NCBI RefSeq assembly: GCF_000143415.4
Contig: NW_003314271.1
Coordinates: forward strand, 372,001-436,000
Reading direction: 5' to 3'
Source of the DNA: Selaginella moellendorffii
Lineage: Eukaryota > Plantae > Lycopodiophyta
DNA length: 64,000 nt
Numbering within the stretch: position 1 is the first letter of the stretch; every line of letters begins with the position of its first letter. A program made the position numbers and the translations under genes. The notes below the pieces were generated by a model. It made no database searches. It was not told where the DNA came from and saw only the letters and a program-made list of their open reading frames with translations. Below, piece after piece: positions 37,101 to 60,832 of this stretch.

Positions 37101-38483
37101 TGTAGAAGGCAAAATTACAATTTTTCCAGGTTCAGCATTATTAGTAGCAGCTCTGTTGCTAACATAGTCCATAAGACCTGTGTAGTAATCCACTTTTAAG
37201 TGTTTTTGATGAGTGCGAAAGAAATTAAGGTTGTTAGATTCAACCTTTACATAAGCATCAACTATAAATTGTTGAGTGAGTTTCCCAGCATGTAGCAATT
37301 GATCATAAAGGAAAGAGTTGCCAATGCTATCTCGTTGAGATAATCGATATGCATAGTACTGGAGTAGCGTTACATGCAACTCATTGTGATAGATTTTTTC
37401 ATGCCAACCTTTATCACCAAATGGTAAAAGTAAAGGATAAACCATAGGATCACAATTTTCATTACGAATAGAGATTTTTATTGGCTGTGAGTTATATGGA
37501 TGTATGCATATTTCTCTGTCAAGAGATGGCTCACCCTCATCAATAGCGAAAACAATAGCAACATCATTAGTCTGTGGTAAATTATAACGATGTAGATTAG
37601 TACTTTCACTTCTAACAATCATGTAAACACCACGTTTTGGGGTTCCATTGCAAATTGAGCGATGTTGTTCTTGTGATTCAAGATTATACATCATTTGAAA
37701 AGCTTGTGCATACGGGTTTATTATTCTTAGCAAGTTATCTAATTGTAATAATAAATTAGAATCACAATTTGTGTTGAATGGGTTTTGCTTTCTAATATTT
37801 GTAGCCTCAGAAGTGTCAAGCATGTAAAGTTGTCCATATGATGGTGGCACGTTAGCTGCAGGATATGCTGAAGCAATTTTGTGATAAATTTGACCATGTA
37901 TTCTAAAGCAATATGGGCCTTTACCACTTAAATTATCAATATTAGCACCCATTGATGCAAAAGCCAAAGCACTGTTGAAATTTCTTATGTTAATTTTAAA
38001 ATTAGAGTTTCTATTTTCATTAAAAAGCATACGCAATATAGTAGGTAAAGATGAAAGCTGGGGAAGGGAAACCTTTCCATTCTGGCAGCACATTGATCTT
38101 GACTCATTTTCAAAATGTAATGCACCACAAAAGACACATATAGATGACATATTTCCAATATTAAACAGTTGTATTGTATGGTCATTATAATTCTTTTGAT
38201 GTGCTAATTTATAGATAGTATAACTGTGATGATTACATGTATTTGTATTAGTTTCATTAGCATTTTCAAGGTTTATATTTGTATGACCTTCATTAGCATA
38301 TGCTATGTTTGTATTAGCATTGTCGAGATTTGAAGTAATTTTTGCATTAGCATGTTCAAGGTCTAGATTAGTTTCTTCATTACCATATGCAAGGTTGTTG
38401 TGAATATGATTATATGTGCTAGTGTCAATAGTTGGAGGCAAATGGTGACATATGCCTCTTAATACTTCGCGAAGCCGAGGCAT
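34101..38483 (-). mobile_element. Helitron RepHel transposase with a single in-frame stop (TAA 35472-35474); element ends not resolved
   Basis: HUH Rep motifs 'PDLFITFTCNPKWPEI', 'VIEFQKRGLPHCH', 'KYLFQYVYKG'. PIF1 helicase motifs 'DGPGGTGKT', 'IWDEISM', 'GDFRQTLPV', 'TISKAQGQT', 'HGQLYVALSR'. The two ORFs are in the same frame. Confidence 0.95.
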
Positions 38484-39100
38484 ATTTGCTAGGGATGATA
38501 AATGAGATGAAATAACCTATCTAGTGTCAAAGCACTTATCTTAACATTTTCAGAGATTCTAAGTAAAAGCCAGAACTCGCCTTCTTCTTACACTGGAAAA
38601 AAAAATTTAAAAAAATAAAAACGAAGACTATACAATGAGAGCACAATCTGTACACACCTTAATCTGTAAACAAAAGAGACTAATCTAGCAACCAATAAAA
38701 CCTAGACACAGGACTGGCACACCTTTTCCAGGGCGTGGTGAGCAACTGTGAGAGGTGGGTGGGGTTTGCAAGTTAGAGAACTCACCTTGGGCTTGTTCTC
38801 TCTCGCAAAAGGACAGCAACTGCAAACTCTCTGATGGTTCTGGCTGTGAAGGCTGGCTCTGGCTTCAGCTCTACCACTGGATAGCATCCACAAACCCAAA
38901 TGAAGACATTTCAAATTTTCACAGCACACAAAAATCCAGATTGTTGGGGTTGGGGGCCAAATTAGCGGCTGCTGGGCTGACTGTGAACACAGACCTTTGC
39001 AGGAAGAAGCACAATTGCTGCGATTGCCACTGATCCGGCAAGCAAGCGTTCCAGCAAGCAAGCGTTAGCTCAATTGCGGCAGGGCATCCAGGGCGAGCTA

Positions 39101-39830
39101 AGAAGAACGGGCACGGGGGCAGGACACCACTGGCACACGTGTCGCTGTGCCTTCTTCTCCCGCCCCACGCGGCTTGGCCGCCTCCCATTGGTCCCTGAAT
39201 TCCCTCGCTCTCGCCTTTCGAGCTTTGTCGCTAAAGATCCTCGCAATGGCCTCAGCAATCTCCTCCCGCTTCACAAACACGTCGGAGCTCCTCCCGTCCG
39301 AAACTTCCACCCCGATGCGGCACCTCTCCGCCATGATCTTGCGGTTGAGCCCCTCCTCGTATATCCGAGGCCAGCAGATGATCGGCACGCCGCTGGAGAC
39401 GCTCTCCAGGACCGAGTTCCATCCGCAGTGGCTCACGAATCCAGCCACTGCCCTGTGCGCCAGAACTTCTCTCTGCGGCGCCCATGAAACCACCAGGTCT
39501 CGTCCCTTGGTCCGCTCGACGAAGTTCTTGTAGAAGTCACTGTTCTTCACCAGGACTGTCGTGTCGCCCTCGTCCACGAACTGGGGCGGCCTGACTGTGA
39601 GCAAGAACGGCACCTTGCTCGCCTCCAAACCGAGCGCGAGCTCCTCGAATTCCTCCTGCGAAAGCTTCGCTATGCTGCTGCCGAATGCGACATAGAGGAC
39701 TGAGTCTGGCTCCTGGGTGTCGAGCCAGTCGAGGCATTCAGAAGAACGGGCACGGGGGCAGGACACCACTGGCACACGTGTCGCTGTGCCTTCTTCTCCC
39801 GCCCCATGCGGCTTGGCCGCCTCCCATTGG
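39101..39830. repeat. Pair of 91-bp direct repeats (39101-39191, 39740-39830) flanking the UGT fragment
   Basis: 'agaagaacgggcacgggggcaggacaccactgg...cctcccattgg' occurs twice with one substitution. Confidence 0.9.
39192..39739 (-). pseudogene. Family-1 UDP-glycosyltransferase C-terminal fragment
   Basis: 'ECLDWLDTQEPDSVLYVAFGS' and PSPG box 'WAPQREVLAHRAVAGFVSHCGWNSVLES...WPRIYEE'. The N-terminal acceptor domain is absent. Confidence 0.9.
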
Positions 39831-42800
39831 CCGGGAGCAAACATCAGAAAAATTTCTCGCGCAACCATGGCTACCGACCCTGGCCCGGGCCTGGGATCCA
39901 ACGGCCGGCGAGCCTCCCCACTATCGCTTTATATGTATAGATATATATATATATTAATTGAGTTTGTATAGAAGTTTATGCAGAATAGAAATGCAGACTA
40001 CAGTTGGGATATATATAAATTTCACAACTATGTAATGATCTGAAAGGAAAATACTAGACTTTTGCAAAGCACACTCAAGAACAACAAAATAACTCCAATG
40101 TTGTGTTTACCAATCTCTGGCAGCTCTCCAAGATTTACAATGTATAGTCTGGACTTTGGATGGGGGAAACCAGCCGCTGTTTGACACGCTACGAAGCTGT
40201 GGAACGGCTTCTACTTCTACGACCCGTCACCGAGAGGTGGGAAAGCCATTGAAGTCACGGTGTTCCTTCCTCCTGAAACAATGGCGAAGTTCAGTGAGAA
40301 AGTCAAAACGAATTAATCCTGTGTACCACCTTACGTGTTAATATCCAGAGTCTATCGTCTCGTCTGCTTGTGTGACATGACTTGACTCCAATCAATCCGT
40401 GCGTGCTGTTTAGAATATAATATCCCCGAGCCTCTAGGAGTCCCTGTGCTGCTTTGCTTGTCACTGCGAGTTCGGGCTTGGATCTTCGACGGGGTGAAGA
40501 TGAAAATGGACAACTTTTAAGTGAAAATCACCGAGGTACATCTTCTCTCGCCTGCAAATCCCACTGAGAGGTGTCAGCTCCCCTTCACAACATTCGCTCT
40601 AATGTAAAAGAGGGACTCCATGCCATTCCTTCAAAGAGTAGCGTTCTATGAATCCACTGGTAAAGACGCAGATCTCCAACAGGGATCATACCGAACGCTG
40701 CCGCAAATGGGAGGATTTCCTCACACCAGAATGGCCGCCATTCAAGAACACGTCTGGATGGAAGCTCGACGAAATATTTCGACTTCTTGGTGATTGGGAG
40801 CGGTGTTGCTGGCCTTCGGTATACGCAACGTTGCCAGGTTGCGTCCGGTGGGGCGTCTTCTCCGACCTCATGAGCTCGGCTTGGCACAGGGCCTGGTAAG
40901 CCAGCATCTCCTGCTTCGCCTAGGCCTCGTTGATCCTACCATTACTCTCGCCCCTGTTACTTACCACGCACAGGCTCTCACGGGAATGCCCACACAACCG
41001 TGTCCGACCAGAGTAGCCATGGAGCCCTAGGAGTGCATGGCATCTTGTCACCACGCCCTCTTCCCTTCCCGGCCACGCGTGCATCCCGCCCATTGGCCGC
41101 CACAACATTGAGCCGATATTCCCGCTAACCATGGCCACCGGTCCTGGCCCGAGCCTGGGCTGGCCTCCCCTTGCCGAGAACCATGGCTTCCGAGGCTGCC
41201 CCGGGCCTGGGATCGGACGGCTGCGGGGGTGTGGGTTCTTCGTTCTTATTATTATAGATATTACTCAAAGCCAAGAAAAAAAAGGAGAAAGCTTCCATGT
41301 TTGCTTTTCTTTCTTTTCCTATTTTGTTTCAGTTTTTTTTTTTTTTCCAGCTTGAGTTGCTGCAGGAGCTGGTGTGCGAGTGATCAAATGCCAGGTTCGC
41401 TCGATTTTAAAAACTCCACTCTTCTGTTTTGATGCTTATCTCCAACTCTTGTCTCGAGTGACAAAACAGATGTTCTTGAGAGGCACCACCACGCAGATCA
41501 TGAACGCTATCCAAAGCTTTACTTGTAGATAGTTTCATACCATTTGCTTGTCGATAGTTTCCAAGTTCCACGCAAAAGATCCAGGCAAGTTTTCATTTTT
41601 GTTCGTTTTGCTCTCTTTTTCTTCTTGAATGTTTTTTTCTTTTTTTAAACGTTTTTTCATCTTGAGTTGCTGCAGGAAGGAGCCCGTCTACGAGTGGCAT
41701 CAAATGCGAGGTTCGGAAAGCCTTCTTCAAACTCTTCACTCTTATCTGATGAAGCCGGTTGGACACATGCAAAGGAAGCATGGCTTGGACACCCCCAAAT
41801 CAAGCTATCGGTTTCAACTCCCTTTCCGGATGAGAGCATTTACTTGTTTTCCATGCGGCTGTACAACGGTATGCTCGAAAGCTGGTCGGGAATTCTGGGC
41901 AATGCCAACTTATTTTTGTTGGGCTTGTGTAAAGAGACCAGGAAAATTTGCGTATCGTATCTTATGAAGGACCAGCACTCTCCCGTCTGTAAACGTTGGA
42001 GATTTGGCAATCTTAGCTCACAAGTCAAAAGAAGTGAGGAAACGAAAATGCTAGACGTTATTTCGTGGACTTTCTGCCAAAAGAATCGACATCCAGGAAC
42101 AACACAGGCTCTAATATTTCTTAATTGTGTTTTCGCAACACAACACCAGTAGCAAAGTTTTAAGCTTGGAAGATGAACTGGCGCCTCAAAGACTTCAATA
42201 CGGACGCGTCGCCCGCCACCATTGCTCCGTCACAGTTCGACTGCTGTAAAAATTTTCTTTTTCAGCTGCAGTCACTGCAAAAGCCAACAATAATGCTGAT
42301 TGTCACAATGTCAAAAAGTTGCAGTGTACGTAATGAAGCGGATAGCAAGACTTCCCATATCTCGCATATCTCTTCCATATATTTCATATCTTTTCATATC
42401 TCGAATGTTGAAAGTCACCATCAGCAACTTTGGCCAGTGTGCAGGCTAGAAGCCGAAGACATCCCACATGCTATTCAGATGCCCACCCAGCCCACAGCTG
42501 GACTTCCACACACACAACACAGCCAGCTAAGGCCAGGCTATACAGGCTTTAGAGGAACGACTTCACTTATCTGCAAAAGCAATTGCATGGCACCGGTCCC
42601 ATGACTGCTGCCGTGATTATAAAAACATCTATCTATCTATCTCGCTTTGTGGTAGAAATTCCATTTCGAGCATTTTCGTTTTATCGTTCTTAAAGTTCAA
42701 AATGATCATTACGCTACGAAAGAACGGAACCTGAATGCGACGGAACAATAAATGAAGGGAAGTGGCGTCGGTCACTCTCCCTCCAAATCTTAGATTTGTT

Positions 42801-43109: not shown

Positions 43110-43260
43110 CAAAATACACGAATATTTTGAATATATTCAACGTAACCTTCAAATATTTTTTATCTGGAAAGAATACCTTGGCACTTGACGGAAACGAATA
43201 TTTTGAATATAACCTTCAAGAATACCTTGGCACGTGATGGAACAATAAACTAAGTCCAGA
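43110..43260 (+). promoter_or_regulatory. Internally repeated GGPPS-like promoter with G-box CACGTG (43231)
   Basis: Repeated 'gaatattttgaatat...ccttcaa...aataccttggcac' units. Copy 2 has two G-boxes (52557, 52634). Confidence 0.4.
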
Positions 43261-43314
43261 CTTGTGTTGGCACGAAAGGTCACAGCATCAAAGCTAAGCA
43301 GGAAAGTTTCAAGC

Positions 43315-44304
43315 ATGAACCAGCAGATCAATGGCCTCGTCCTCCCTCCGAGAATCCACTACCGCCGCGTCGCCGCCAGCGCCGCCCCCGGCACCACCAC
43401 CACCACCAAGTCCAGCAAGTTCGACTACGATCTCTATGTCAAGACCAAGCGCGAGGCCGTGTCCATCTCCCTCCACCGCGCTTTCCCCCCGCCGCTCAAG
43501 CAGCCCGAGACGCTCAAGATGCACGACGCAATGCGCTACGCGGTGGGCGGCGGGCGGCGGACGTGCCCCATCGCTTGCATCGCAGCGTGCGAGCTGGTGG
43601 GCGGCACCCAGGACGACGCCATGCCGGGAGCCTGCGCGCTTGAGATGATCAAGGCCAGCTTCTGCGTCCAGGACGATCTCCCGTCCATTGACGACTCGGA
43701 GCTCCGCCACGGCAAGCCCACCGTCCACCGCGCGTTTGGCATACCCACGGCGCTCTTCGCGGGAACCGCGCTGCTCGCGCTCGGCTTCGAGCACCTGGCG
43801 GCGCGCTACAGCGGCGATACGGCGGCGAGGATGGTGGCGGAGGTGGGCCGGGCTATCGGGTCAACGGGTCTGCTGGCCGGTCAAGCCGTGGACCTGGGCA
43901 TCGAGAACCCGGACCGCGGGGTAGAGCTGGAGACGCTCGAGTTCGTCCACCTCCACAAGACGTCGGCGCTGCTCGAGGCGTCGTTGGTGGCCGGGGCCAT
44001 TGCTGGTGGCGCGAGCGAGCAGGAGATTGAGGCGCTGAGAGCGTATGGACGGGTGACCGGGCTTCTCTACCAGATCGTGGATGATGTCGCGGACGCTACC
44101 AAGACAATGGAGGAGCTCGGGAAGATCCCGGGCCAGGACGCGATGGCGGGCAAGAGCACGTATTCCACCATCTTGGGAGTGGACAAGTCGAGGGAGATGG
44201 TTGGGCAGCTGTTGGTGGAGGCCAAGGAACGATTGGGTGTGTTCGAGGAGACCAAGGCACTGCCGCTGATCCACCTAGCCGATCACTTTGCTAATTGGGC
44301 TTGA
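43315..44304 (+). CDS. Intronless GGPP-synthase-like trans-prenyltransferase with atypical active site
   Basis: FARM 'DDLPSIDD', SARM 'YQIVDDVAD', 'GQAVDL', 'HLHKT', CxxxC 'CIAAC', 'GKSTY'. Short Ala/Thr/Ser-rich N-terminal extension. Confidence 0.9.
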   Translation: MNQQINGLVLPPRIHYRRVAASAAPGTTTTTKSSKFDYDLYVKTKREAVSISLHRAFPPPLKQPETLKMHDAMRYAVGGGRRTCPIACIAACELVGGTQDDAMPGACALEMIKASFCVQDDLPSIDDSELRHGKPTVHRAFGIPTALFAGTALLALGFEHLAARYSGDTAARMVAEVGRAIGSTGLLAGQAVDLGIENPDRGVELETLEFVHLHKTSALLEASLVAGAIAGGASEQEIEALRAYGRVTGLLYQIVDDVADATKTMEELGKIPGQDAMAGKSTYSTILGVDKSREMVGQLLVEAKERLGVFEETKALPLIHLADHFANWA

Positions 44305-44395
44305 GACTTTAGTTTGGTATAATGACTATTGTTGTTTCTTATTATTATTATTATTATGAGTTTAACACAACAATAATAGAATCAACTGGAAATAA

Positions 44396-46439
44396 TTATT
44401 TGAAGCTCAGAAGTTGTGTGGCTTTTTTCTGGATAGTCTCCCAAGCCTTAATAACATGCTTAACCTCAGTTAAAGTACCTCCAACGGCCATTCGCAACAA
44501 AAAATCCCCCGAGAGCACCTGTTTTTCAGGTGTTTGGGTCATTACATGGTGGCATGATGCATTTAGAAACTTACTGTATGTGTGATGAATGTTGTTTCGT
44601 TTGAATTCACTGCGTGAAGTAAATTTTCATTGAGAGCATTTACGGAACTGGCCTCAATTGCTTTGAGCCTGAAGCAAACAAGTCCAAATCTGCAAGGCAC
44701 TAAAACCTGCAATACAAACTTCTTTGCTATACTGAATTCAAATTTAAGAAGTTGAATTTCACGAACCTCGAAACGTTTGTCTTCAGTGACTTTTCTCTCG
44801 AAAAGCCTAGCTAGGCAAGTATGATGTATGATATAGTTTTTAAGTTTGGAGGAGCCATAAAGTCGCATGACAAGCCACAACTTCAGAGCTCTAGAAAGAA
44901 ACAGACCATGATATGTGCCAACAATTAAAACATAAACAAAGCAACAACCTGAATCTTTTTCCGAGTGATACTTGCCAGTCCTTGAAATCCACGACTTCCC
45001 CCGCCTCAGATGCCTGTACTAAATAAACAAAATGATAATTAATTAATTACTCCACACCTTGTTACGAAGATATTCTGACTGGACCGAAAGCGTTGAAGTC
45101 AAGGTCCTTGCATTCTTTAATATAACACAAGTAAGAAGTGGGAATAACTTAGCAACAATACCTTAACCCATAATACAGAGCAATCTAGATTTGTCAAGAG
45201 CCATTTGTGAGTTCCAACATTGAGTGAATCAGCCTTCTCGATGCCATCCAAGAAATGCCTATACTCGGGGCATATGCACGCACTGCCTCCGTATGCGGCA
45301 TCTACGTGAAACCACATTTCATATTCCTGGCAAATGGATCGATTATCAAAGCAAGCAACAAGCAAACAAAGTTGGAAATGCCAGATTACCTGAGCAATTT
45401 CACCAAGGTCTAGCAATGGATCTACAGCGGCGGAAGACGTGGTACCAAGCTGCAATAAGAGCGTTATGTAAGGATGCAGAAGACCCACGTATCACAGTAC
45501 CGTGGCACCCAGATACAGTGGTATGACATCGTCCCCGCCTTCCTCAATAGCTCCACGCAAGAGAGCAGGCGAGAGCGCGTAGTTTGTTTCCTTGGTTGTG
45601 GGCAGCACCACCAGCTTGATGCCCGCAATCTTACAGGCCTTGTGCAAGCACATGTGAGTCTGATCCGACGTGTACGCTCGGAGTCTGCGCACCACGTCTT
45701 CCTCTACAAGCCCATTTGGCGTGTGCTTCGAAATGGCTCGACTCCGGGCGGCACACAGTGTGACGAGCATTCCCTCGGTCGCTGAGCCTTGGATGACGCC
45801 CCCGCCTTTGCCTAGAGAGTAAAACAAGCAATACGTAAGGCGAGACGTGGCAGTGTGTGATAGACCTGATGATCCCGAGAGGAAGGAGTCTGGCAGCTCG
45901 AGAAGCTTTCCCAACCAGTTTACGACAATAATCTCCAGCTCCGTGGCCGCGGGTGAGGCGATCCAGCTGAAGTTGACGGTATTGAAGCCGGAGATGAGGA
46001 TCTCGGCTAGAATGCCGGCGGTGCTACTGTTTGCCGGATAGTAGCTGAAGAAGCTCGGGCTCTGCCAGTGCGTGAGGCCGGGAATGATGATGTTGCTCAC
46101 ATCTAAACAGCCACATTGCCAGATTTCATGAGAGATTCGATGATATAGACGGGAGTACCAACCAGCAAGAATGTCATCGAAGGACTCTGGATCTTGAGGT
46201 GCAAATGCGGGGATTAAATCATTCAAGTATCCTGGCTGCACACAGTAGTACAAGTGAGTAGTGACGAGGGAGGAGGAACAGGAGAGAAACGTGAAACATA
46301 CACTAACTTGGCTTCTGACCGGAAACTTCTCAATGTGGCGATAGTAGTCGGCCACAAAATCCACCATTCGGTGGGCATGCTCCCGAAACTCCTCAGAGTC
46401 CATCAACTTGAGGCCGGGTGGTGGTGCCGATTCGCCCAT
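44396..46439 (-). CDS. Divergent aromatic amino acid decarboxylase AADC2a (appears intact)
   Basis: '[20 protein letters not shown]', 'SPAATELE', 'HVDAAYGG', '[17 protein letters not shown]', 'VQSEYLRNK', '[14 protein letters not shown]'. Stop TAA at 44396-98. Confidence 0.92.
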
Positions 46440-46598
46440 CTCTGAGCTCTCGGGCTATGGCTCCTCAATCAATAATCTTCCTCCCACGTTTTCTATCTGG
46501 ATCGTATGTTTAGTAAGAGAGTTTCTTTAATCTTTGGCAAGTTTCTTTTACTACCTAGGTATATTTCTAAATTCTATCAAGTCTTGGTGAGAGTGGCA
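46440..46598. promoter_or_regulatory. 159-bp putative bidirectional promoter between AADC2 and methyltransferase A (copy at 55871-56029)
   Basis: Divergent ATGs at 46439(-) and 46599(+). Confidence 0.6.
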
Positions 46599-47807
46599 AT
46601 GGCTGTGGACAACCAGGAGCTTGAAGTGTTTTACGATGAAGGATGTGTGGTGTATGAAGCAGTGTGGGGTGAGCATATGCATTCGGGTTACTTCGATGCT
46701 GGCAACACTCGCGACTTTCGAGCGGCACAAATCCGAATGCTCGAGGAGCTCTTGGCCTGGGCAGGAGTACCGGGTAAGCATTTCAATCGCTCCGAGACAC
46801 ACCCTTTTACAATGTGTGCATCTAGACGACGAGCAAAGCCGGCCAAGGAACATTCTGGATGTGGGCTGTGGATTTGGAGGAACATCTCGGTATCTATCCA
46901 ATAAGTACTCCGCGAATGTCACAGGAATAGCATTGAGTAAGTACGAGATTGGCAGAGCTAGAGCCATTGCAAAGGCAGAGGGTGTTTGTGACAAGGTATT
47001 GCTCTACCATCGCACAAATCAAAAGCATCTTCTTGGTTCATTCAGGTGGCATTTCAAGTGGCAGATGCTTTGAGTCTGCCCTTCGAAGACAACCAGTATG
47101 ATCTGGTTTGGTGCATGGAGTGTGCCGATCATATTGCAGATAAACTCAAGGTAAAACACTCTCATAGAGTTTGAGCTTCATATGTTACTATTTCTTCGTC
47201 TGAGCAGCTAATGCAAGAGATGACGCGTGTGGCCAAGCCCGGAGGCTGGGTTGTGCTCACAGGATGGTGTCACCGAGAGTTTACCCATGGCGAAACTTCA
47301 CTCAAGAAGCATGAGCTGGTCATAGATTTAATCAAGACTGAAAACGTGAGTTAAATTATATTTTAATATATGTGATTTGTGTTTGCAGAAGATCCTGGAC
47401 AAAGTCCGTGCAGCATATCTTCTTCCACCTTGGTGCCAGACATCTGATTACAAAGTTATAGCAATCGACGCGGGTTTGCAAGTGTGTGCTGTAATCTCAA
47501 TATAATATTTAGAGTTTACTGTGATTAATGTTGCCAGGGGGTAAAAGTGGAAGACTGGACACGGCACATGCTTCCGTTTTGGGGTCTGCTCACTGCAGAG
47601 ATCTTTACCTTGAGAGGCGCATTCAAGATTTTGACATCAGGTAATACAAAACTTTCACAAGAGTCTTACCTCTCTAATGAGTAAACAGGATGGGCACATC
47701 TTCGTGCAAGTATATCCTTGGCATATCACTTCTCCTACATGGACAAAGGATTCAAGACTGGCGTTTTCAAGTATGCTGTGGTTATGGGAAAGAAAGATAA
47801 GAAGTAG
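46599..47807 (+). CDS. gamma-tocopherol-methyltransferase-like SAM methyltransferase, type A copy 1 (7 exons, no transit peptide)
   Basis: 'FYDEGCVVYEAVWGEHMHSGYF', 'ILDVGCGFGGTSRYL', 'FQVADALSLPFEDNQYDLVWCME', 'RVAKPGG..WCHR', 'LPPWC', 'EDWT..MLPFW'. Ends GKKDKK*. Confidence 0.9.
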
Positions 47808-47937
47808 TTCCAGTAGCAGGAGACTTGCCTCCTTTATTATCTGTTTTGATTCATAAAGGTCGAACAATTGACACAGCAAATCATCAATAATAATTCATTA
47901 TTTCTTACACTGGATCGCCAGCGTCTTTGTTCTTGCA

Positions 47938-48270
47938 ATGGCCAGCGAGATCGAAGAGATTTATGATGAGGGATGCGTGGTGTACGAGGCCGTGTGGGGC
48001 GAGCATATGCACTCGGGCTACTTTGAGGCGGGCAAGCCTGGGGACTTTCGAGTGGCACAAGTCCGAATGATCGAGGAGGTCCTCTCTTGGGCCGGAGTAC
48101 CAAGTAAGCTTCCCTCTCTATTCTATTACAATCTCCTAGATGATGAGCAAAGCCGGCCTCGAGACATACTGGACGTGGGCTGCGGTTTTGGGGGAACTTC
48201 TCGATATCTGTCCAAGAAGTACTCGGCAAATGTGAAAGGAATAGCACTGAGCGATTACGAGATCGCCAGC
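47938..48270 (+). pseudogene. Truncated type-C methyltransferase (exon 2 joined to 3' flank)
   Basis: Matches the 58387 gene up to 'gagatcgccag', then jumps to sequence resembling 59610 onward. Confidence 0.85.
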
Positions 48271-50119: not shown

Positions 50120-51085
50120 CCACTTGGGTGGCACACTTGTTCAGAAGTTCAAGCTGGTGATACTTGAAGGGCTCCACTCTGTTGCCTATGAGATGCAAAT
50201 AGAGCTGTAAGTTATGCAGTGCCTGATTCTCAGGTTTGTGCTTCAGATAAGTCAAGCCTGTGTGGACAACTTCCAGCACCACCCCAACGTGAGATACGTA
50301 GCCCAGAGTGCTTCCCGGAAGCTTGGTAACCACATCCAAGGGATTAACCACGGTGAGGACTCGGAGGCTCTGCAACCTTTCTGCCGCCACCTTGAACGCA
50401 TGGTTGCCACCTTGACGACCACCTAGGGCAAGTGCGGTCACCGGGATCAGCTTACCATTGGGACATGTCGTAGGCACACAGGATTGCGAGCGAAGCTCCA
50501 AAACTATGCCCGGCCACAGTGATGCTCAATTTTTCATCAATGAGGCTCCTGAGCGTGGAAACTATCTGATCACGGGCACAGAGGTGTTTCCAAACTCCTC
50601 GCCTGGATAAGAACGAGTGTAAAGTGTGGATACATGGTCGGACACCAATACGGGCGACGAGCTTCCGGCCGCCACTGCTAGTTTCACTGTATTCAGCCGA
50701 GGGAGGGGCAAGAGCGAGTCGATCTCCGACCATTCCCGAGTGAGCTCCATGCCCCGAAACGCAGGGAGGATGTCTCTTCGTCCCAGCCTCAAGCTTTCTT
50801 CATCATGGCCAGGTAGCCAGACCTGGCCATATGATCTGTATCTTTGGTGCTGCCATAGATGTACTTGTGTATCGTGTAGCCGGTGTTGCCCATCTGGAGC
50901 TTGTGGAATAGCTGTGACTTGCCATGAATGCACAGGCCATACCAGCGAGATGCTTGACTTCGTTGAATCCATCCACCACGCATTAGATGTGCTGGCCGTA
51001 GCGGATCAGCTCCTGGCAGAGAGTTTCGTCCATGGGATTCCCAAGCATGCCTTTCCAGAATGTCTGGCTTTGGACTATCCATTTC
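50120..51085 (-). pseudogene. Class-3 lipase pseudogene, inverted paralogue of the 63226 gene
   Basis: 'QTFWKGMLGNPMDETLCQELIRYGQ', 'SITVAGHSFGASLA', 'VVNPLDVVTKLPG', 'HNLQLYLH'. Several frameshifts and deletions. Confidence 0.88.
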
Positions 51086-51377
51086 CCTGTTAGAGATGGT
51101 GCCGAGAAATGAAGAGACAAAGACTTCGAGTATGATAGTACTTTTAGGTTTGCCAAATTGCCATGTCCGTATTCGATCGAAAAGCTGAAGGTATGCCCAC
51201 TGTCAGTGCAGCGGGCGAGAAGCTTTAGTCCATGCTTCCTGCTGGACAAGCTTCTTTTGTTCGTACATCATGGCAGAAAAACTTTTGAAAACGTTTAAAG
51301 AACTTACAGAAATTCGGCAGGTCTAGGCTATTGGGAACAAAAAAGAATAAAGAATAAAAAAACTAAAAGAAAGATCG

Positions 51378-52735: not shown

Positions 52736-53694
52736 ATGAACCAGCAGGTCAATGGCGTCGTCCTCCCTCCGAGGATCCACTACCGCCGCGTTGCCGCTAG
52801 CGCCGCCCCCGGCACCACCACCACCACCAAGCCCAGCAAGTTTGACTACGATCTCTATGTCAAGACCAAGCGCGAGGCCGTGTCCATCTCCCTCCACTCG
52901 GTTTTCTCCCCGCCGCTCAAGCAGCCCGAGACGCTCAAGATGCACGAGGCAGTGCGCTACGCGGTGGGCGGCGGGCGGCGGACGTGCCCCATCGCTTGCA
53001 TCGAGGCGTGCGAGCTGGTGGGAGGCACCTAGGACGACGCCATGCCGGGAGCCTGCGCGCTTGAGATGATCAAGGCCAGCTTCTGCGTCCAGGACGATCT
53101 CCCGTCCATCGACGACTCGGAGCTCCGCCACGGCAAGCCCACCGTCCACCGCGCGTTTGGCATCCCCACGGCGCTCTTTGCGAGCACCGCGCTGCTCGCG
53201 CTCGGCTTCGAGCACCTGGCGGCGCGGGCGAGGATGGTGGCGGAGGTGAGCCGGGCTATCGGGTCAACGGGTCTGCTGGCCGGTCAAGAACCCGGACCGC
53301 GCGGTGGAGCTGGAGACGCTCGGCCTCGAGCAGCGCCGACGTCTTGTGGAGGTGGACGAACCGGGGCCATTGCTGGTGGCGCGAGCGAGCAGGAGATTGA
53401 GGCGCTGAGAGCGTATGGACGGGTGACCGGGCTTCTCTACCAGATCATGGATGATGTCACGGATGCTACCAAGACAATGGAGGAGCTCGGGAAGATCCCG
53501 GCCAGGACGCGATGGCGGGCTTAACGAGGATCCATTGGAGAGCAAGTCTAGCTCCAATAGCGTATATCAAAGCCATCTTGGGCGTGGACAAGTCGAGGGA
53601 GATGGTTGGGCAGCTCTTGGTGGAGGCCAAGGAACGATTGGGTGTGTTCGAGGAGACCAAGGCACTGCCTCTGATCCGCCGATCACTTTGCTAA
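52736..53694 (+). pseudogene. GGPPS-like pseudogene
   Basis: CAG>TAG at 53030-53032, plus internal deletions, frameshifts and a foreign insert near 53520. Confidence 0.92.
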
Positions 53695-53811
53695 TTAGGC
53701 TGTTTTTGGAGACTATATTACTATTGTTGTTGTTGTTGTCGTTATTATTATTATTATTATTATTATTAAGTTTAAGTTTAGCACAACAATAATAAAATCA
53801 ACTGGAAATAA

Positions 53812-55870
53812 TCATTTGGAGCTCAGAAGTAGTGTGGCTTTTTTCTGGATAGTTTCCCAAGCCTTAATAACATGCTTGGCCTCAGTTAAAGTACCTCCAA
53901 CGGCCATTCGCAACAAAAAATCTCCTGAGAGCACCTGTTTTTCAGGTGTTTAGATCATTACATGGTGGCATGATTCATTTAGAAACTTACTGTATGTGTA
54001 ATGAATGTTGTTTCATTTGAATTCACTGCGTGGAGTAAATTTTCATTGAGAGCATTTACAGAACTGGCCTCAATTGCTTTGAGTCTGAAGCAAACAAGTC
54101 CAAATCTGCAAGGCACTAAAACCTGCAATACAAACTATTTTGTTATACTGAATTCAAATTAAAGAAGTTGAATTTCACGAACCTCGAAACGTTTGTCTTC
54201 ACTGACTTTTCTCTCGAAAAGCCTAGCTAGGCAAGCATGGTGTATGATATAGTTTTTAAGTTTGGAGGAGCCATAAAGTCGCATGACAAGCCACAACTTC
54301 AGAGATCTAGAAAAATACAAACCAATTAGATATGTGCCAACAATTAAAACATAAACAAAGCAACAACCTGAATCTTTTGCCAAGTGATACTTGCCAGTCC
54401 TTGAAATCCACCACTTCCCCCGCCTCAGATGCCTGTACTAAATAAACAAAATTACAATTAACTAATATTTACTCCACACCTTGTTACGAAGATATTCTGA
54501 CTGGACCGAAAGCGTTGAAGTCAAGGTTCTTGCATTCTTTAATATAACACAATATACTTTAGTAAGAAGTTGGAATGACTTAGCAACAATACCTTAACCC
54601 ATAATACAGAGCAATCTAGATTTGTCAAGAGCCATTTGTGAGTTCCAACATTGAGTGAATCAGCCTTCTCGATGCCATCCAAGAAATGCCTATACTCGGG
54701 GCATATGCACGCACTGCCTCCGTATGCGGCATCTACGTGAAACCACATTCCATATTCCTGGCAAATGGATCAATTATCAAAGCAAGCAACAAGCAAACAA
54801 AGTTGGAAATGCCAGATTACCTGAGCAATTTCACCAAGGTCTAGCAATGGATCTACAGCGGCGGAAGACGTGGTACCAAGCTGCAATAAGAGCGTTATGT
54901 AAGGATGCAGAAGACCCACGTATCACAGTACCGTGGCACCCAGATACAGTGGTATGACATCGTCCCCGCCTTCCTCAATAGCTCCACGCAAGAGAGCAGG
55001 CGAGAGCGCGTAGTTTGTTTCCTTGGTTGTGGGCAGCACCACCAGCTTGATGCCCGCAATCTTACAGGCCTTGTGCAAGCACATGTGAGTCTGATCCGAC
55101 GTGTACGCTCGGAGTCTGCGCACCACGTCTTCCTCTACAAGCCCATTTGGCGTGTGCTTCGAAATGGCTCGACTCCGGGCGGCACACAGTGTGACGAGCA
55201 TTCCCTCGGTCGCTGAGCCTTGGATGACGCCCCCGCCTTCGCCTAGAGAGTAAAACAAGCAATACGTAAAGCGAGACTTGGCAGTGTGTGATAGACCTGA
55301 TGATCCCGAGAGGAAGGAGTCTGGCAGCTCGAGAAGCTTTCCCAGCCAGTTTACGACAATAATCTCCAGCTCCGTGGCCGCGGGTGAGGCGATCCAGCTG
55401 AAGTTGACGGTATTGAAGCCGGAGATGAGGATCTCGGCTAGAATGCCGGCGGTGCTACTGTTTGCCGGATAGTAGCTGAAGAAGCTCGGGCTCTGCCAGT
55501 GCGTGAGGCCGGGAATGATGATGTTGCTCACATCTAAACAGCCACATTGCCAGATTTCATGAGAGATTCGATGATATAGACGGGAGTACCAACCAGCAAG
55601 AATGTCATCGAAGGACTCTGGATCTTGAGGTGCAAATGCGGGGATTAAATCATTCAAGTATCCTGGCTGCACACAGTAGTACAAGTGAGTAGTGACGAGG
55701 GAGGAGGAACAGGAGAGAAACGTGAAACATACACTAACTTGGCTTCTGACCGGAAACTTCTCAATGTGGCGATAGTAGTCGGCCACAAAATCCACCATTC
55801 GGTGGGCATGCTCCCGAAACTCCTCAGAGTCCATCAACTTGAGGCCGGGTGGTGGTGCCGATTCGCCCAT
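53812..55870 (-). CDS. Divergent aromatic amino acid decarboxylase AADC2b (appears intact)
   Basis: Same exons and motifs as AADC2a. Stop TGA at 53812-14. Confidence 0.9.
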
Positions 55871-56029
55871 CTCTGAGCTCTCGGGCTATGGCTCCTCAAT
55901 CAATAATCTTCCTCCCACGTTTTCTATCTGGATCGTATGTTTAGTAAGAGAGTTTCTTTAATCTTTGGCAAGTTTCTTTTACTACCTAGGTATATTTCTA
56001 AATTCTATCAAGTCTTGGTGAGAGTGGCA

Positions 56030-57238
56030 ATGGCTGTGGACAACCAGGAGCTTGAAGTGTTTTACGATGAAGGATGTGTGGTGTATGAAGCAGTGTGGGG
56101 TGAGCATATGCATTCGGGTTACTTCGATGCTGGCAACACTCGCGACTTTCGAGCGGCACAAATCCGAATGCTCGAGGAGCTCTTGGCCTGGGCAGGAGTA
56201 CCGGGTAAGCATTTCAATCGCTCCGAGACACACCCTTTTACAATGTGTGCATCTAGACGACGAGCAAAGCCGGCCAAGGAACATTCTGGATGTGGGCTGT
56301 GGATTTGGAGGAACATCTCGGTATCTATCCAATAAGTACTCCGCGAATGTCACAGGAATAGCATTGAGTAAGTACGAGATTGGCAGAGCTAGAGCCATTG
56401 CAAAGGCAGAGGGTGTTTGTGACAAGGTATTGCTCTACCATCGCACAAATCAAAAGCATCTTCTTGGTTCATTCAGGTGGCATTTCAAGTGGCAGATGCT
56501 TTGAGTCTGCCCTTCGAAGACAACCAGTATGATCTGGTTTGGTGCATGGAGTGTGCCGATCATATTGCAGATAAACTCAAGGTAAAACACTCTCATAGAG
56601 TTTGAGCTTCATATGTTACTATTTCTTCGTCTGAGCAGCTAATGCAAGAGATGACGCGTGTGGCCAAGCCCGGAGGCTGGGTTGTGCTCACAGGATGGTG
56701 TCACCGAGAGTTTACCCATGGCGAAACTTCACTCAAGAAGCATGAGCTGGTCATAGATTTAATCAAGACTGAAAACGTGAGTTAAATTATATTTTAATAT
56801 ATGTGATTTGTGTTTGCAGAAGATCCTGGACAAAGTCCGTGCAGCATATCTTCTTCCACCTTGGTGCCAGACATCTGATTACAAAGTTATAGCAATCGAC
56901 GCGGGTTTGCAAGTGTGTGCTGTAATCTCAATATAATATTTAGAGTTTACTGTGATTAATGTTGCCAGGGGGTAAAAGTGGAAGACTGGACACGGCACAT
57001 GCTTCCGTTTTGGGGTCTGCTCACTGCAGAGATCTTTACCTTGAGAGGCGCATTCAAGATTTTGACATCAGGTAATACAAAACTTTCACAAGAGTCTTAC
57101 CTCTCTAATGAGTAAACAGGATGGGCACATCTTCGTGCAAGTATATCCTTGGCATATCACTTCTCCTACATGGACAAAGGATTCAAGACTGGCGTTTTCA
57201 AGTATGCTGTGGTTATGGGAAAGAAAGATAAGAAGTAG
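56030..57238 (+). CDS. gamma-TMT-like methyltransferase, type A copy 2
   Basis: No difference from 46599..47807 seen by eye. Confidence 0.88.
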
Positions 57239-57368
57239 TTCCAGTAGCAGGAGACTTGCCTCCTTTATTATCTGTTTTGATTCATAAAGGTCGAACAATT
57301 GACACAGCAAATCATCAATAATAATTCATTATTTCTTACACTGGATCGCCAGCGTCTTTGTTCTTGCA

Positions 57369-58173
57369 ATGGCCAGCGAGATCGAAGAGATTTATGATGA
57401 GGGATGCGTGGTGTACGAGGCCGTGTGGGGCGAGCATATGCACTCGGGCTACTTTGAGGCGGGCAAGCCTGGGGACTTTCGAGTGGCACAAGTCCGAATG
57501 ATCGAGGAGGTCCTCTCTTGGGCCGGAGTACCAAGTAAGCTTCCCTCTCTATTCTATTACAATCTCCTAGATGATGAGCAAAGCCGGCCTCGAGACATAC
57601 TGGACGTGGGCTGCGGTTTTGGGGGAACTTCTCGATATCTGTCCAAGAAGTACTCGGCAAATGTGAAAGGAATAGCACTGAGCGATTACGAGATCGCCAG
57701 CTCCATTGCTCCTGTTTTTCTTTCTATTTTAATATATGTGATTTGTGTTTGCAGAAGATCCTAGACAAAGTCCGTGCAGCATATCTTCTTCCACCTTGGT
57801 GCCAGACATCTGAATACAAAGTTGTAGCAATCGACTCGGGTTTGCAGGTGTGTGTTATAATTTCAATATATTATCTAGAATTTATTGTGATTAATGTTGC
57901 CAGGGGGTAAAAGTGGAAGACTGGACACAGCACATGCTTCCGTTTTGGGGTCTGCTCACTGCAGAAATCTTTACCTTGAGAGGCGCATTCAAGATTTTGA
58001 CATCAGGTAATACAAAACTTTTGCAAGAGTCTTACCTCTCTAATGAGTAAACAGGATGGGCACATCTTCGTGCAAGTATATCCTTGGCATATCACTTCTC
58101 CTACATGGACAAAGGATTCAAGACTGGCATTTTCAAGTATGCTGTGGTCATGGGAAAGAAAGGTAAGAATTAG
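57369..58173 (+). pseudogene. Chimeric methyltransferase: truncated type-C 5' part fused to a diverged type-A 3' half
   Basis: Junction near 57727. Exons 3-4 are missing and the last three exons are A-like, ending GKKGKN*. Confidence 0.8.
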
Positions 58174-58386
58174 TTCCAGTAGCAAGAGACTTGCCTCCTA
58201 ACTCCAAACTTATTCTCTGTTGTGATTCATAAAGGTCGATCACAGGTGACAATTGACAAAGCAATAATTTAATCATCAATAATAATTCATGATTTCTTAC
58301 ACTAGGAAGGAATTTTAGCGTGAGTCCTAGCCGCGGGGGAGGATCTTGCGGCAGTTCCCGTAAGCGCCAGTGTCTGTGTTCTTGCA

Positions 58387-59598
58387 ATGGCCAGCGAGAT
58401 TGAAGAGTTTTATGATGAGGGATGCGTGGTGTACGAGGCCGTGTGGGGCGAGCATATGCACTCGGGCTACTTTGAGGCGGGCAAGCCTGGGGACTTTCGA
58501 GTGGCACAAGTCCGAATGATCGAGGAGGTCCTCTCTTGGGCCGGAGTACCAAGTAAGCTTTTGATCATGGTATCCCTCTCTATTCTATTACAATCTCCTA
58601 GATGATGAGCAAAGCCGGCCTCGAGACATACTGGACGTGGGCTGCGGTTTTGGGGGAACTTCTCGATATCTGTCCAAGAAGTACTCGGCAAATGTGAAAG
58701 GAATAGCACTGAGCGATTACGAGATCGCCAGAGCCAAAGCCATCGCGAGGGCGGAAGGAGTTTCAGACAAGGTAGATTCCACTCCGTTGTTTGGGGCTGT
58801 TTCTAACACTTAACGAACAGGTGACGTTCCAAGTAGCAAATGCACTGAATCAACCGTTCGAAGACGGCCAGTTTGATCTCGTCTGGTGCATGGAATGCGC
58901 AGTGCACATTGAGGACAAACTCAAGGTAGAAGAATTCATAATCTTTTCATCTGGGTTTGTTTAAATCCCGCACGCGATTGCAGCTTGTGCAAGAGATGGC
59001 ACGCGTGACCAAGCCCGGAGGTCGGGTGGTGCTTGTGAGCTGGTGCCACAGAGAACTGAAGCCTGGAGAAACTTCACTCAAGAAGGATGAGCAAGTAAGC
59101 GAAGTTCCTAGATATTTCTTGATCCCTTAAAAAGATTGTCATAACATATGGCTTCAGGCGCTCTTGGATAAGATCTGTGCTGCTTACTTCTTTCCACCCT
59201 GGTGCGCCACTTCAGAGTACGAAACATTAGCATGCAATGCGGGTTTGCAAGTAAGACTTCGGGTTCTTCATCGACTCTATGGCTGATCTTATGTATTATC
59301 TGATCTGTAGGAAGTAAAGGTGGAAGATTGGACTCGACACATGCTTCCATTCTGGGGAATGCTCACGGGCCAGCTCTTTACATTGGGAGGTGCATTCAAG
59401 CTCCTGACATCAGGTAAGTAAAGATCTTGTTACGTGTCGCAGCTTTAGTTTCTCGTTTTTATTTCTTGCTTTCCAGGGTGGGCACATATGCGGACAAGTC
59501 TGTCATTGGCTTACCACTTCTTCTACATGGACAAAGGCTTCAAGAATGGCACCTTCAAGTATGCCGTGGTGGTGGGAAAGAAAGAGCTGTTATCATAA
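58387..59598 (+). CDS. gamma-TMT-like methyltransferase, type C (7 exons, intact, no transit peptide)
   Basis: 'MASEIEEFYDEGCVVYEAVWGEHMHSGYF', 'LDVGCGFGG', 'FQVANALNQPFEDGQFDLVWCME', 'RVTKPGGRVVLVSWCHR', 'LLDKICAAYFFPPWC'. Stop TAA at 59596-98. Confidence 0.9.
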
Positions 59599-60832
59599 GG
59601 GAGCATTGGATTCCCCATTGCTTCTGTTTTTCTCCAAATTTATGAAGGTATGCAATCCACTTGGAGCATGGAATCAGTTAACCAATTAGTTACTTTTCAC
59701 GTCCATCGCCCACCTTCTCCATCTCCCTGCGGAACCATATCATTCTTGAAGTATCTTACCATCCCCACCGGTGTCGTGTTAACCTTGTTCTTGTTAGATG
59801 GTAAAAAACTTACTACTATGTAAAACTTATATAAACATGAAGTTAACATTTGAAATAGTCCGAGATGGCTTGTCACCCGTTGCTCGTCAAGCTCGGACGA
59901 CGACGTACACCAGCGAGATGCAAAGCAGACGTAGAGACACGTCGCCAGCAGCCCCATGCTCGACTTCAACGCACACGACCTCCCGGACCTCATGGGAGCC
60001 TGGAGCGACAGGCCCTGCTCCTCCAGGCACTCTGTCCCTCCTTCCCCAATGACAACTGACGACACCACCCTCACTAAAGAACGACGTCTCTTATAATTCC
60101 TTTATTTTTTGTTTAAAAAAGCGTGTATAGCCCGCAAGAGCACATGCTCCTGCGGGCTAAAGAAGACTATATACGCATGATCTATCTATGTATTTATCTT
60201 GCGGCCCACGAGCATCTCATGAACCAACTCGAATATGAATAAATACATATACTTGACCAACTTCAATAAAAACCATTTTCAATGGCATCTGTCACTCAGG
60301 TATGATACCCCATTCCCTTTCATACACTATAATTACGAATACCCCCAGCTGGGAGCTGCAAGACTCAATATATTCATTCTTTCATATATTGTTTACATGG
60401 TTTTGAAGCAAGAGACCAAAAGATTTAGAAATGAATTTCAACAATGCATTGCTCAATATAGATTAAGTATAGTATTCTATAACTACAAATATCACCTGTA
60501 TTATTAAAGTCATATAAGAATAAAATCTTTTATAAGACCTGTTTGACCAAAAGGATTAAAATACATATAATATCTAACCCCATGAGATGCTCGTGGGACA
60601 AGAAATTAAAGACTACCTTAAAAAAGGTTTTGTGCTGTAACCTGGAAATAAGAGAGCTGTAGTCACTCCTGCAGTTTACGCACGCTCGGTAGAATTTCTT
60701 CACTTTGACATTCACAACACTGAGCAAATCAACCGCAAGGTATGGACAACTTCTAGCAATACGTTTATGTATTCCCTCATTGATTGTCTTTCTCGAGAGT
60801 AAACAAGCTGAGAACGTTCCAGCTGTGTTTTA

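Follow-up and report, generated by a model that had tools for sequence, protein, structure and literature searches.

A GGPP synthase descendant with an eroded IPP site and its candidate role in an alkaloid gene block of Selaginella moellendorffii

A 64,000-nucleotide stretch of the Selaginella moellendorffii genome (assembly GCF_000143415.4, contig NW_003314271.1, positions 372,001 to 436,000 of the forward strand; hereafter the window, with positions counted from its first letter) carries an intronless gene that RefSeq annotates as a geranylgeranyl diphosphate (GGPP) synthase. It lies in a compact block together with genes for an aromatic amino acid decarboxylase (AADC), methyltransferases (MT) and a cytochrome P450. 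Judged from its sequence, this gene, here called gene A, appears to be a neofunctionalised descendant of a plastid-type (type II) GGPP synthase (GGPPS). Its product is very probably a catalytic enzyme that no longer elongates, having kept the site for the allylic substrate and its metal ions while losing the residues that bind isopentenyl diphosphate (IPP). As its specific function we tentatively propose, at a little under an even chance, that of an indole C3 prenyltransferase in the pathway to selaginellic acid.

The open reading frame (ORF) of gene A begins with the ATG at 43315 and continues uninterrupted for 329 codons to the stop codon at 44302-44304. Its product matches the Pfam profile PF00348 (polyprenyl_synt; E 1.2e-41, 143 bits against a cut-off of 27), and its nearest solved structures are the large subunits of plant GGPPS and geranyl diphosphate synthase (GPPS), namely 5e8l_A (AtGGPPS11, E 3e-85) and 3kra_A (6e-78). 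The first-pass annotation had suggested a structural model; the one built here with AlphaFold2 from 108 homologs is confident, with a mean predicted local distance difference test (pLDDT) of 90 and a predicted template modelling (TM) score of 0.87, and Foldseek aligns it with the mint GPPS large subunit 3krf_D at a TM score of 0.92, normalised to the target length. Among the 50 matches listed, Foldseek returned nothing but ordinary isoprenyl diphosphate synthase (IDS) structures. Both the family profile and the all-alpha fold therefore place the protein in the trans-IDS superfamily.

Within that superfamily, gene A is 44-48% identical to the type II GGPPS and GPPS large subunits (AtGGPPS11 5e8l, mint 3kra/3krf and rice GGPPS1 5xn5), with TM scores of 0.87-0.92 by target length. 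It shares with them a first Asp-rich motif (FARM) with the two-residue insertion (DDxxxxD), the second Asp-rich motif (SARM), the GQ, KT and GK motifs, one CxxxC motif and the absence of introns. It differs from them by the replacements K81R, R84C, H113K, H119Q, R132H, F252Y, K274Q and R328W, by a much shorter presequence and by a very long stem in the phylogeny. Residues 1-31 (pLDDT <50) are the only disordered part of the model, and canonical homologs carry 50-100 more N-terminal residues; the remaining presequence is possibly a short transit peptide. An ATG further upstream is soon closed by a stop codon in the window haplotype, whereas on the other haplotype it is read in frame and starts a RefSeq model of 355 residues.

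Gene A is transcribed. RNA contigs from four independent studies cover it, one of which, 1141 nt long, corresponds to 43256-44396 without gap, mismatch or intron. The runs behind these contigs are RNA, because the neighbouring AADC and methyltransferase genes are cleanly GT-AG spliced in the same runs. All genes of the block are represented in contigs of the four studies, which attest presence and not levels. At 90% identity gene A clusters with the Selaginella RefSeq proteins XP_024528823/4, which are encoded on its own 3.09-Mb scaffold. Given that their ends are sequence of a pseudogene copy lying downstream, XP_024528823.1 and XP_024528824.1 are chimeric models spanning a 9.4-kb repeat. For the same reason the RefSeq isoform X2 and the 279-residue form were set aside as chimeras.

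The altered motifs listed in the first-pass annotation are all present, namely GGRRTCP (residues 79-85), EMIKASFCVQDD (110-121), LRHGKPTVH (130-138) and AGTALL (149-154), and so are those listed as retained: the FARM DDLPSID (120-126), the SARM DDVAD (256-260), GQ (189-190) and KT (215-216). Conservation was counted in an alignment with 118 plant and cyanobacterial GGPPS homologs, and gene A was compared with its closest non-allelic relative, SELMODRAFT_133501 on S. moellendorffii scaffold GL377684 (copy B, 80% identity). Three residues found in all 118 homologs are replaced in both copies: Lys81 by Arg, His113 by Lys, and Arg132 by His in gene A and Asp in copy B. Both copies likewise carry Cys for Arg84 (Arg in 110 of 118), Gln for His119 (115 of 118), Val for Asn137 (105 of 118) and Thr for Asp151 (106 of 118). 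A further change, R82L, is confined to copy B, and gene A remains positively charged at 81, 82 and 113. Five more replacements in gene A had been overlooked: F252Y (Phe in 115 of 118), L259A (Leu in 118 of 118), K274Q (Lys in 117 of 118), P284S (Pro in 117 of 118) and R328W (Arg in 117 of 117), the last of which removes the C-terminal Arg of canonical enzymes. In human farnesyl diphosphate synthase (FPPS) structures, the diphosphate of IPP is also clamped by the second Arg of the RRG motif and by a C-terminal basic residue.

The replacements are concentrated at the IPP site. Two sets of residues, nine for the IPP site and eleven for the allylic and metal site, were fixed beforehand from the literature and from structural knowledge of FPPS and GGPPS. 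In gene A, six of the nine IPP-site residues are replaced (K81R, R84C, H113K, R132H, F252Y and R328W), while all eleven allylic and Mg-binding residues are unchanged (D120, D121, D126, R131, Q190, D193, K215, D256, D257, D260 and K270). Among the other conserved columns, 18 of 80 are changed. Fisher tests give p = 0.002 for the IPP set against the allylic set and p = 0.010 for the IPP set against the remaining conserved columns. In copy B, the changes amount to 7/9 at the IPP site and 20/80 elsewhere. Gene A departs from the canonical state at 13 of 14 signature positions, as compared to at most 7 of 14 for every other top homolog. The IPP clamp of a functional GGPP synthase (EC 2.5.1.29) comprises the Lys and two Arg of GGKRxRP, the His of EMIH, the second Arg of RRG, the Phe of FQ and the C-terminal Arg. 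This clamp, whose residues replaced here are canonical in 110-118 of the 118 homologs, is broken in gene A, and the two Asp-rich motifs and the allylic ligands (the Arg after the FARM, the Lys of KT and the Lys of GK) are in place.

The consequences of such changes are known from other enzymes. In cyanobacterial CrtE, Lys53, Arg54 and Arg56 of the GGKRLRP motif line the IPP site, and the K53A mutant is inactive (PMC7261888). In a rust-fungus GGPP synthase (GGDPS), changing the Arg equivalent to R84 into Pro kills coupling and yields terpene synthase activity, and a stink-bug FPPS loses its activity when given the same motif swap (PMC7484799). In insects, eroded IPP-binding motifs mark the non-elongating descendants of IDS enzymes (PMC10962984). 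The first-pass annotation had stated that IDS-derived terpene synthases of insects and fungi have eroded IPP sites, in agreement with these two reports, and gene A displays the same combination of IPP-site erosion with kept Asp motifs (PMC10962984, PMC7484799).

Given that every lost residue binds diphosphate, any second substrate bearing a diphosphate would be disfavoured, including a second dimethylallyl diphosphate (DMAPP) in an irregular coupling. The proposal that the enzyme ionises an allylic diphosphate without elongating it is well supported by the kept allylic and Mg site, the lost IPP residues, the expression and the purifying selection described below; the same evidence does not separate a terpene synthase from a prenyltransferase. 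One structural argument of the first-pass annotation was not supported. The Phe four positions before the FARM, which had been taken to shorten the chain pocket, is not conserved and is Thr in copy B. In mutagenesis of avian FPPS, a Phe at this position with a small residue at -5 reportedly still permits C20 products, and the Phe alone is said not to restrict the donor to C5. The length of the donor is thus not set by this residue.

The comparison of the two paralogs suggests that the altered site is maintained. Between gene A and copy B the synonymous divergence (dS) is 0.25 and the nonsynonymous divergence (dN) is 0.098, with a dN/dS of 0.39, which falls to about 0.2 in the catalytic core (codons 140-324) and exceeds 1 in codons 1-60, which include the presequence. 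The derived IPP-site states are common to both paralogs and to both haplotypes. Purifying selection relative to a paralog of the same signature, together with expression, therefore favours a working enzyme that would ionise a prenyl diphosphate without condensing IPP. In maximum-likelihood trees, the A/B pair falls inside the land-plant GGPPS, its exact placement being blurred by long-branch effects. Its stem is about ten times as long as typical tip branches, at 1.37 substitutions per site against a median tip of 0.13 in the tree of 121 rows and at 1.28 in the tree of 47 rows. Tree and dN/dS pattern together point to a burst of change that preceded the A/B duplication and was followed by constraint.

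A GGPPS-like pseudogene in the window adds to this history. It bears a Gln codon turned into a stop near 53030, deletions of 6 and 11 codons and a frameshift near 53500, and it still carries GGRRTCP, EMIKASFCVQDD and LRHGKPTVH as in gene A. Since the derived motifs persist in it, the erosion of the IPP site is older than the tandem duplication that produced this copy.

The lineage is narrowly distributed. Among 1.84 billion representative proteins, no further relative above 50% identity was found outside the cluster, and in the same set the score drops from 575 bits for copy B to 295 bits for ordinary GGPPS. As sampled, the lineage is confined to S. moellendorffii or its genus. One apparent distant member, P0142, which has Cys84, Tyr252 and Trp328 in common with gene A, was rejected, as the tree places it within the grass GGPPS and the likeness is convergent. 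This sequence (L002:6186-7103, on a JGI metagenome contig; 60% identity to P0140) has independently acquired Cys, Tyr and Trp at the positions of R84, F252 and the C-terminal Arg, Glu for K274, and an NDxxD motif where the SARM would stand; a monocot enzyme may here have lost elongation convergently. Four further plant-type GGPPS relatives, P0152, P0147, P0201 and P0235, keep both Asp motifs and have eroded IPP-site residues; three of these four also lack the ELGK..GKD segment.

Copy B resides in a different setting. Its locus (L001:8092-13970 on GL377684) has the order cis-prenyltransferase, GGPPS-like B, cis-prenyltransferase and P450 fragment, and may be a separate terpenoid mini-cluster. 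The flanking cis-prenyltransferases (PF01255) read DGNVRW in place of DGNRRW. No synteny was detected between the A and B loci beyond the gene itself, and the window contains no cis-prenyltransferase genes.

Several known enzyme groups resemble gene A in part. XiaM and Ord1, both from Streptomyces, are members of the superfamily of all-alpha-helical prenyl synthases; Ord1 transfers a prenyl group to indole, with neither IPP condensation nor cyclisation of farnesyl diphosphate (FPP), and relies on Tyr215-Gln216 directly before the second Asp motif, both residues being present in XiaM as well (PMC12510300). Gene A likewise combines the IDS fold and an intact FARM with a Tyr-Gln dyad (Tyr252-Gln253) before its second Asp motif, a place taken by Phe-Gln in 115 of the 118 homologs. 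The two differ in that Ord1 has a pseudo-SARM (DDxxA) without metal and uses FPP and free indole as substrates, whereas gene A keeps a DDxxD motif (DDVAD) and its activity is predicted from sequence. Ord1 is also only ~31% identical to Sinapis GGPPS and had an origin independent of gene A. The insect enzymes (Phyllotreta, Murgantia, Lutzomyia) and the rust-fungus enzyme (Melampsora ILTPS) are recent FPPS or GGPPS duplicates that lost IPP residues, including the Arg of GGKRxR, and kept the first and usually the second Asp motif. However, neither their kingdoms nor their IDS subfamilies (FPPS; type III GGDPS) are those of gene A, and their products are terpenes, not prenylated amines. Gene A arose within the plant type II GGPPS, independently of the insect and fungal IDS descendants and of XiaM/Ord1. 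The plant small subunits (SSU-I and SSU-II/GRP) are also GGPPS-derived, non-elongating and CxxxC-bearing; unlike them, gene A keeps its whole allylic and metal site and lies nearer to the large subunits.

The genomic neighbourhood suggests a possible acceptor. The allele of gene A on the other haplotype is XP_002970322.2 (SELMODRAFT_231604), on a 2.76-Mb scaffold of assembly GCA_000143415.2, which represents the second S. moellendorffii haplotype because it matches the window at ~95.6% over 5 kb. The gene order there is Lipase_3, kinase, GGPPS-like, AADC (minus strand), methyltransferase, methyltransferase, P450 (minus strand) and Lipase_3, and the five core genes, from the GGPPS-like gene to the P450, form a single clean unit within 10 kb. 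The window haplotype contains the same five genes in a rearranged form, with the unit partly duplicated 9.4 kb downstream (Table 1). As in recognised gene clusters, genes for three or more non-homologous classes of enzyme that could plausibly act in one pathway stand side by side, and the GGPPS-like protein is the only candidate in the block for a prenyl transfer.

The adjacent decarboxylase, AADC-b, ends 91 bp from the stop codon of gene A, as the first-pass annotation had noted (AADC-b stop at 44396-44398, minus strand). Its coding sequence, assembled from RNA-supported introns, includes the lysine that binds pyridoxal 5'-phosphate (THKWLL) and the catalytic-loop Tyr (SEYLRNK), and owing to this Tyr it is expected to be a decarboxylase and not an aldehyde synthase. 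In plant AADCs, Gly or Ser at position 370 of Catharanthus tryptophan decarboxylase (CrTDC) gates indolic or phenolic substrates, and Ala or Ser at position 103 gates unhydroxylated or hydroxylated ones (bioRxiv 10.1101/404970). Both AADC-b and its tandem duplicate AADC-c have Ala at CrTDC-103 (YYPANSS, after the conserved Pro) and Gly at CrTDC-370, and in AADC-b this Gly aligns with Ser372 of the opium-poppy tyrosine decarboxylase (PsTyDC). The Ala/Gly pair is the state of Catharanthus tryptophan decarboxylase, whereas tyrosine decarboxylase has Ser/Ser. Nearer the start of the window lies a third and more divergent decarboxylase, AADC-a, which may be a tyrosine- or phenylalanine-type decarboxylase. 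A hordenine-glycoside cluster, combining AADC, N-methyltransferase and UDP-glycosyltransferase (UGT), was also considered. It is weakened by the Ala103/Gly370 state of AADC-b and AADC-c, as opposed to Ser/Ser, and by the UGT sequence at 39.1-39.9 kb, which is no more than a fragment and does not occur in the compact block of the other haplotype.

S. moellendorffii is described, in citations of Wang et al. 2009 by later papers, as a source of the pyrrolidinoindolines selaginellic acid, 5-hydroxy-N8,N8-dimethylpseudophrynaminol and their relatives (PMC8156211, PMC5385659, PMC7823444). Pseudophrynaminol, which has a primary alcohol on its prenyl group, has been synthesised through dearomative C3 prenylation of tryptamine (PMC8006174). 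Alkaloids of this kind need a tryptophan decarboxylase, two N-methylations, a prenyl transfer to indole C3 that sets off ring closure, and a P450 that oxidises the prenyl methyl, and the block has a candidate for each step. The Selaginella compounds reportedly bear a 3-carboxybut-2-enyl substituent on C-3a together with two N-methyls.

In the mechanism that we propose for the indole C3 prenyltransferase, the gene A enzyme would bind and ionise a prenyl diphosphate, most simply DMAPP. Neither IPP nor any other second diphosphate would be bound, and the carbocation would instead be captured by a diphosphate-free substrate. This acceptor would occupy a remodelled pocket, less basic and more aromatic, formed by Cys84, Lys113, Gln119, His132, Tyr252, Gln274 and Trp328. 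The acceptor would be N,N-dimethyltryptamine, supplied by the neighbouring AADC and the two methyltransferases. Once the indole had been prenylated at C3, its tertiary amine would attack C2 and so create the quaternary pyrrolidinoindoline skeleton with the prenyl group on C3a, and the neighbouring P450 could then oxidise a prenyl methyl group to the alcohol of the dimethylpseudophrynaminol series and to the acid of selaginellic acid. The enzyme would in that case be the plant counterpart, separately evolved, of XiaM and Ord1.

The first-pass annotation had likewise raised a prenyltransferase acting on the amine product of the neighbouring AADC. The compact block, the Ala103/Gly370 state, the prenylated pyrrolidinoindolines of the species and the Tyr-Gln dyad speak for this idea; the adjacency is not preserved in the paralog and there is no common promoter. 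Indeed, several observations weigh against an indole prenyltransferase. Copy B has the same active-site signature and no adjoining AADC or methyltransferase genes. It sits between cis-prenyltransferases with a P450 fragment next to it, and the pair may therefore have served terpenoid and not alkaloid metabolism ancestrally. Gene A and AADC-b are convergent, their 3' ends abutting or overlapping, and share no promoter, and the RNA contigs attest presence only, not co-regulation. The full DDxxD second Asp motif is unlike the pseudo-SARM of Ord1, and a few ordinary homologs have Tyr at 252 as well. Decarboxylases of the basal clade (AtPAAS) have Gly370 too, and this residue is therefore compatible with tryptophan and not diagnostic. 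AADCs are usually cytosolic, while the short basic presequence of gene A may target plastids. Finally, every functional step of the indole prenylation is one that we infer. Searches of the literature for the locus tag or a published pathway returned nothing.

Other functions for gene A have to be weighed against these points. The location of copy B, in a block of cis-prenyltransferase, GGPPS-like gene, cis-prenyltransferase and P450, would suit an IDS-type terpene synthase that ionises GPP, FPP, GGPP or a cis-prenyl diphosphate made by a neighbour and ends in cyclisation, elimination or water capture with no second substrate. The same kind of IPP-site erosion marks the insect and rust-fungus enzymes, the switch in the fungal enzyme hinges on the Arg equivalent to R84, and at least one fungal IDS-like terpene synthase keeps a full SARM. 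However, the window copy lies amid amine-pathway and not terpenoid genes, S. moellendorffii is already rich in terpene synthases, with a large set of canonical and microbial-type enzymes, and the replacements (Lys113, His132, which is Asp in the paralog, Gln119, Gln274 and Tyr252) resemble a polar or aromatic second-ligand site and not plain hydrophobic infill, so that we regard this function as unlikely. We give somewhat less credence to a prenyltransferase or other non-elongating enzyme whose acceptor is unrelated to the neighbours, the clustering being coincidental, or is derived from tyramine or phenylethylamine and would be O- or N-prenylated. In its favour, the paralog lacks the adjacency, Selaginella species also make hordenine-type tyramine alkaloids, and AADC-a (17.5-19.6 kb) has at position 103 the Ser that is tied to hydroxylated substrates. 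Yet the five genes form a compact block that both haplotypes carry, Ala103 of the adjacent AADC-b and AADC-c disfavours tyrosine, and no prenylated tyramine alkaloid from S. moellendorffii was found in the literature searched.

A non-catalytic role seems improbable. The CxxxC motif mediates the interaction of large and small subunits, and gene A retains one (CIAAC, residues 88-92); together with the eroded IPP sites of other plant GGPPS paralogs such as P0152 and P0147, this would be compatible with a partner resembling SSU-I or SSU-II/GRP that dimerises with a true GGPPS and alters its product or location. A scaffold would nevertheless have no need of the 0/11 changes at metal and allylic positions or of a core dN/dS of ~0.2. 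The small subunits have lost the catalytic Asp motifs, both of them in SSU-I, and have two CxxxC motifs, whereas the Asp motifs of gene A are intact and its CxxxC is single. Gene A also matches large subunits at E 1e-80 to 1e-85, as compared to 1e-40 for rice SSU-II/GRP (5xn6_C) and only 7.5e-21 for the mint small subunit 3kra_B. Residual chain elongation to GPP, FPP or GGPP, as the RefSeq name would have it, is the reading to which we attach the least weight and which we consider very improbable. It would require that K81R and H113K act as conservative changes and that other residues compensate, and positive charge is in fact retained at 81, 82 and 113 in gene A. Most of the diphosphate clamp is nonetheless gone through R84C, R132H (Asp in the paralog), R82L in the paralog, R328W and K274Q, single equivalent changes abolish activity in CrtE and the fungal GGDPS, and K81, H113 and R132 are kept in 118/118 homologs.

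Table 1. Features of the window around gene A (positions in the window; strand + or -).
Feature	Position	Strand	Description
AADC-a	17502-19616	-	~45-65% identity to AADC-b; Ser at CrTDC-103, basal-type PLG motif
Helitron-like element	34101-38483	-	1003-residue Helitron-type ORF, then PIF1-like helicase ORF; GC content 0.34-0.36
UGT fragment	39098-39901	-	C-terminal half only, internal duplicated segment
Upstream ATG	43237..43248	+	Closed by a stop three codons later in the window haplotype
GGPPS-like gene A	43315..44304	+	329 residues, intronless; FARM and SARM kept, IPP-site residues swapped
N-terminal presequence of gene A	43315..43413	+	~33 residues, basic, Ser/Thr/Ala-rich, zero acidic residues
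AADC-b	44396..46439	-	PF00282, ~494 residues, spliced, introns from RNA contigs; convergent with gene A
MT1	46602..47872	+	S-adenosylmethionine-dependent, CMAS/Methyltransf_25 type, gamma-TMT-like; 927-nt RNA contig, six GT..AG introns
MT2 first-exon fragment	47916..48269	+	Truncated; 367 bp of other-haplotype MT2 match; weak CMAS/Methyltransf_25 match
Lipase_3-like sequence	50131-51105	-	Flanks the block, as on the other haplotype
GGPPS-like pseudogene	52736..53735	+	In-frame stop, two deletions, frameshift; tblastn/blastn
AADC-c	53815..55870	-	Intact tandem duplicate of AADC-b, same pocket residues
MT1'	56033..57342	+	Intact duplicate of MT1, ~0% diverged
MT2 (intact)	58365..59614	+	Contiguous 93.5% match to other-haplotype MT2; ~77% nucleotide identity to MT1
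Cytochrome P450	60650..62845	-	PF00067 on ORFs 60833-61264 and 61215-61955; 504-residue call on the other haplotype
Lipase_3-like sequence	63030-64000	+	Flanks the block, as on the other haplotype

The arrangement of the window haplotype reflects the tandem duplication. The Pfam families of MT1 were read from the gene call on the other haplotype. Pieces of the first exon of MT2 and of the 3' portion of MT1 lie at 47916-48269, 57347-57700 and 57722-58307, which places the breakpoints of the duplication inside the methyltransferase genes. Between the tandem units (45150-48150 against 54580-57580), divergence is ~5% across the GGPPS-like gene and the AADC 3' half, and 0-1% across the AADC 5' half and MT1. 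This uneven divergence suggests recent gene conversion or assembly collapse. The Lipase_3-like copy at 50.1-51.1 kb is a fragment lying between the tandem units. The Helitron-like element is located upstream of gene A and is absent from the compared stretch of the other haplotype, and the UGT fragment is probably a pseudogene carried with a transposon-rich insert.

Taken at its widest, the proposal is that gene A encodes the first plant soluble aromatic prenyltransferase on the trans-IDS fold, which would dimethylallylate N,N-dimethyltryptamine at C3 and anchor a five-gene lycophyte alkaloid cluster; we put this forward as a possibility that falls clearly short of an even chance. To our knowledge, no plant enzyme of the IDS fold prenylates an indole alkaloid, and all plant aromatic prenyltransferases that we know of are membrane-bound UbiA-type proteins, which are hard to express and engineer. 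In the literature searched, we found no plant IDS-derived terpene synthase or non-elongating enzyme of this kind. If the proposal is true, indole prenylation would have an origin independent of the ABBA enzymes of fungi and bacteria, the UbiA enzymes of plants and bacterial XiaM/Ord1, and a soluble GGPPS-derived indole-amine prenyltransferase would constitute a new plant enzyme class and a handy biocatalyst for pyrroloindolines. It would also be a plant case of the switch from IDS to non-elongating enzyme that is known in insects, rust fungi and Streptomyces, made via the same residues, and the residue pattern offers a sequence rule for finding further such enzymes. The biosynthesis of the antiplatelet alkaloid selaginellic acid becomes testable with five named genes, and the block, if the proposal is true, would provide an early case of clustered genes for specialised metabolism in a lycophyte.

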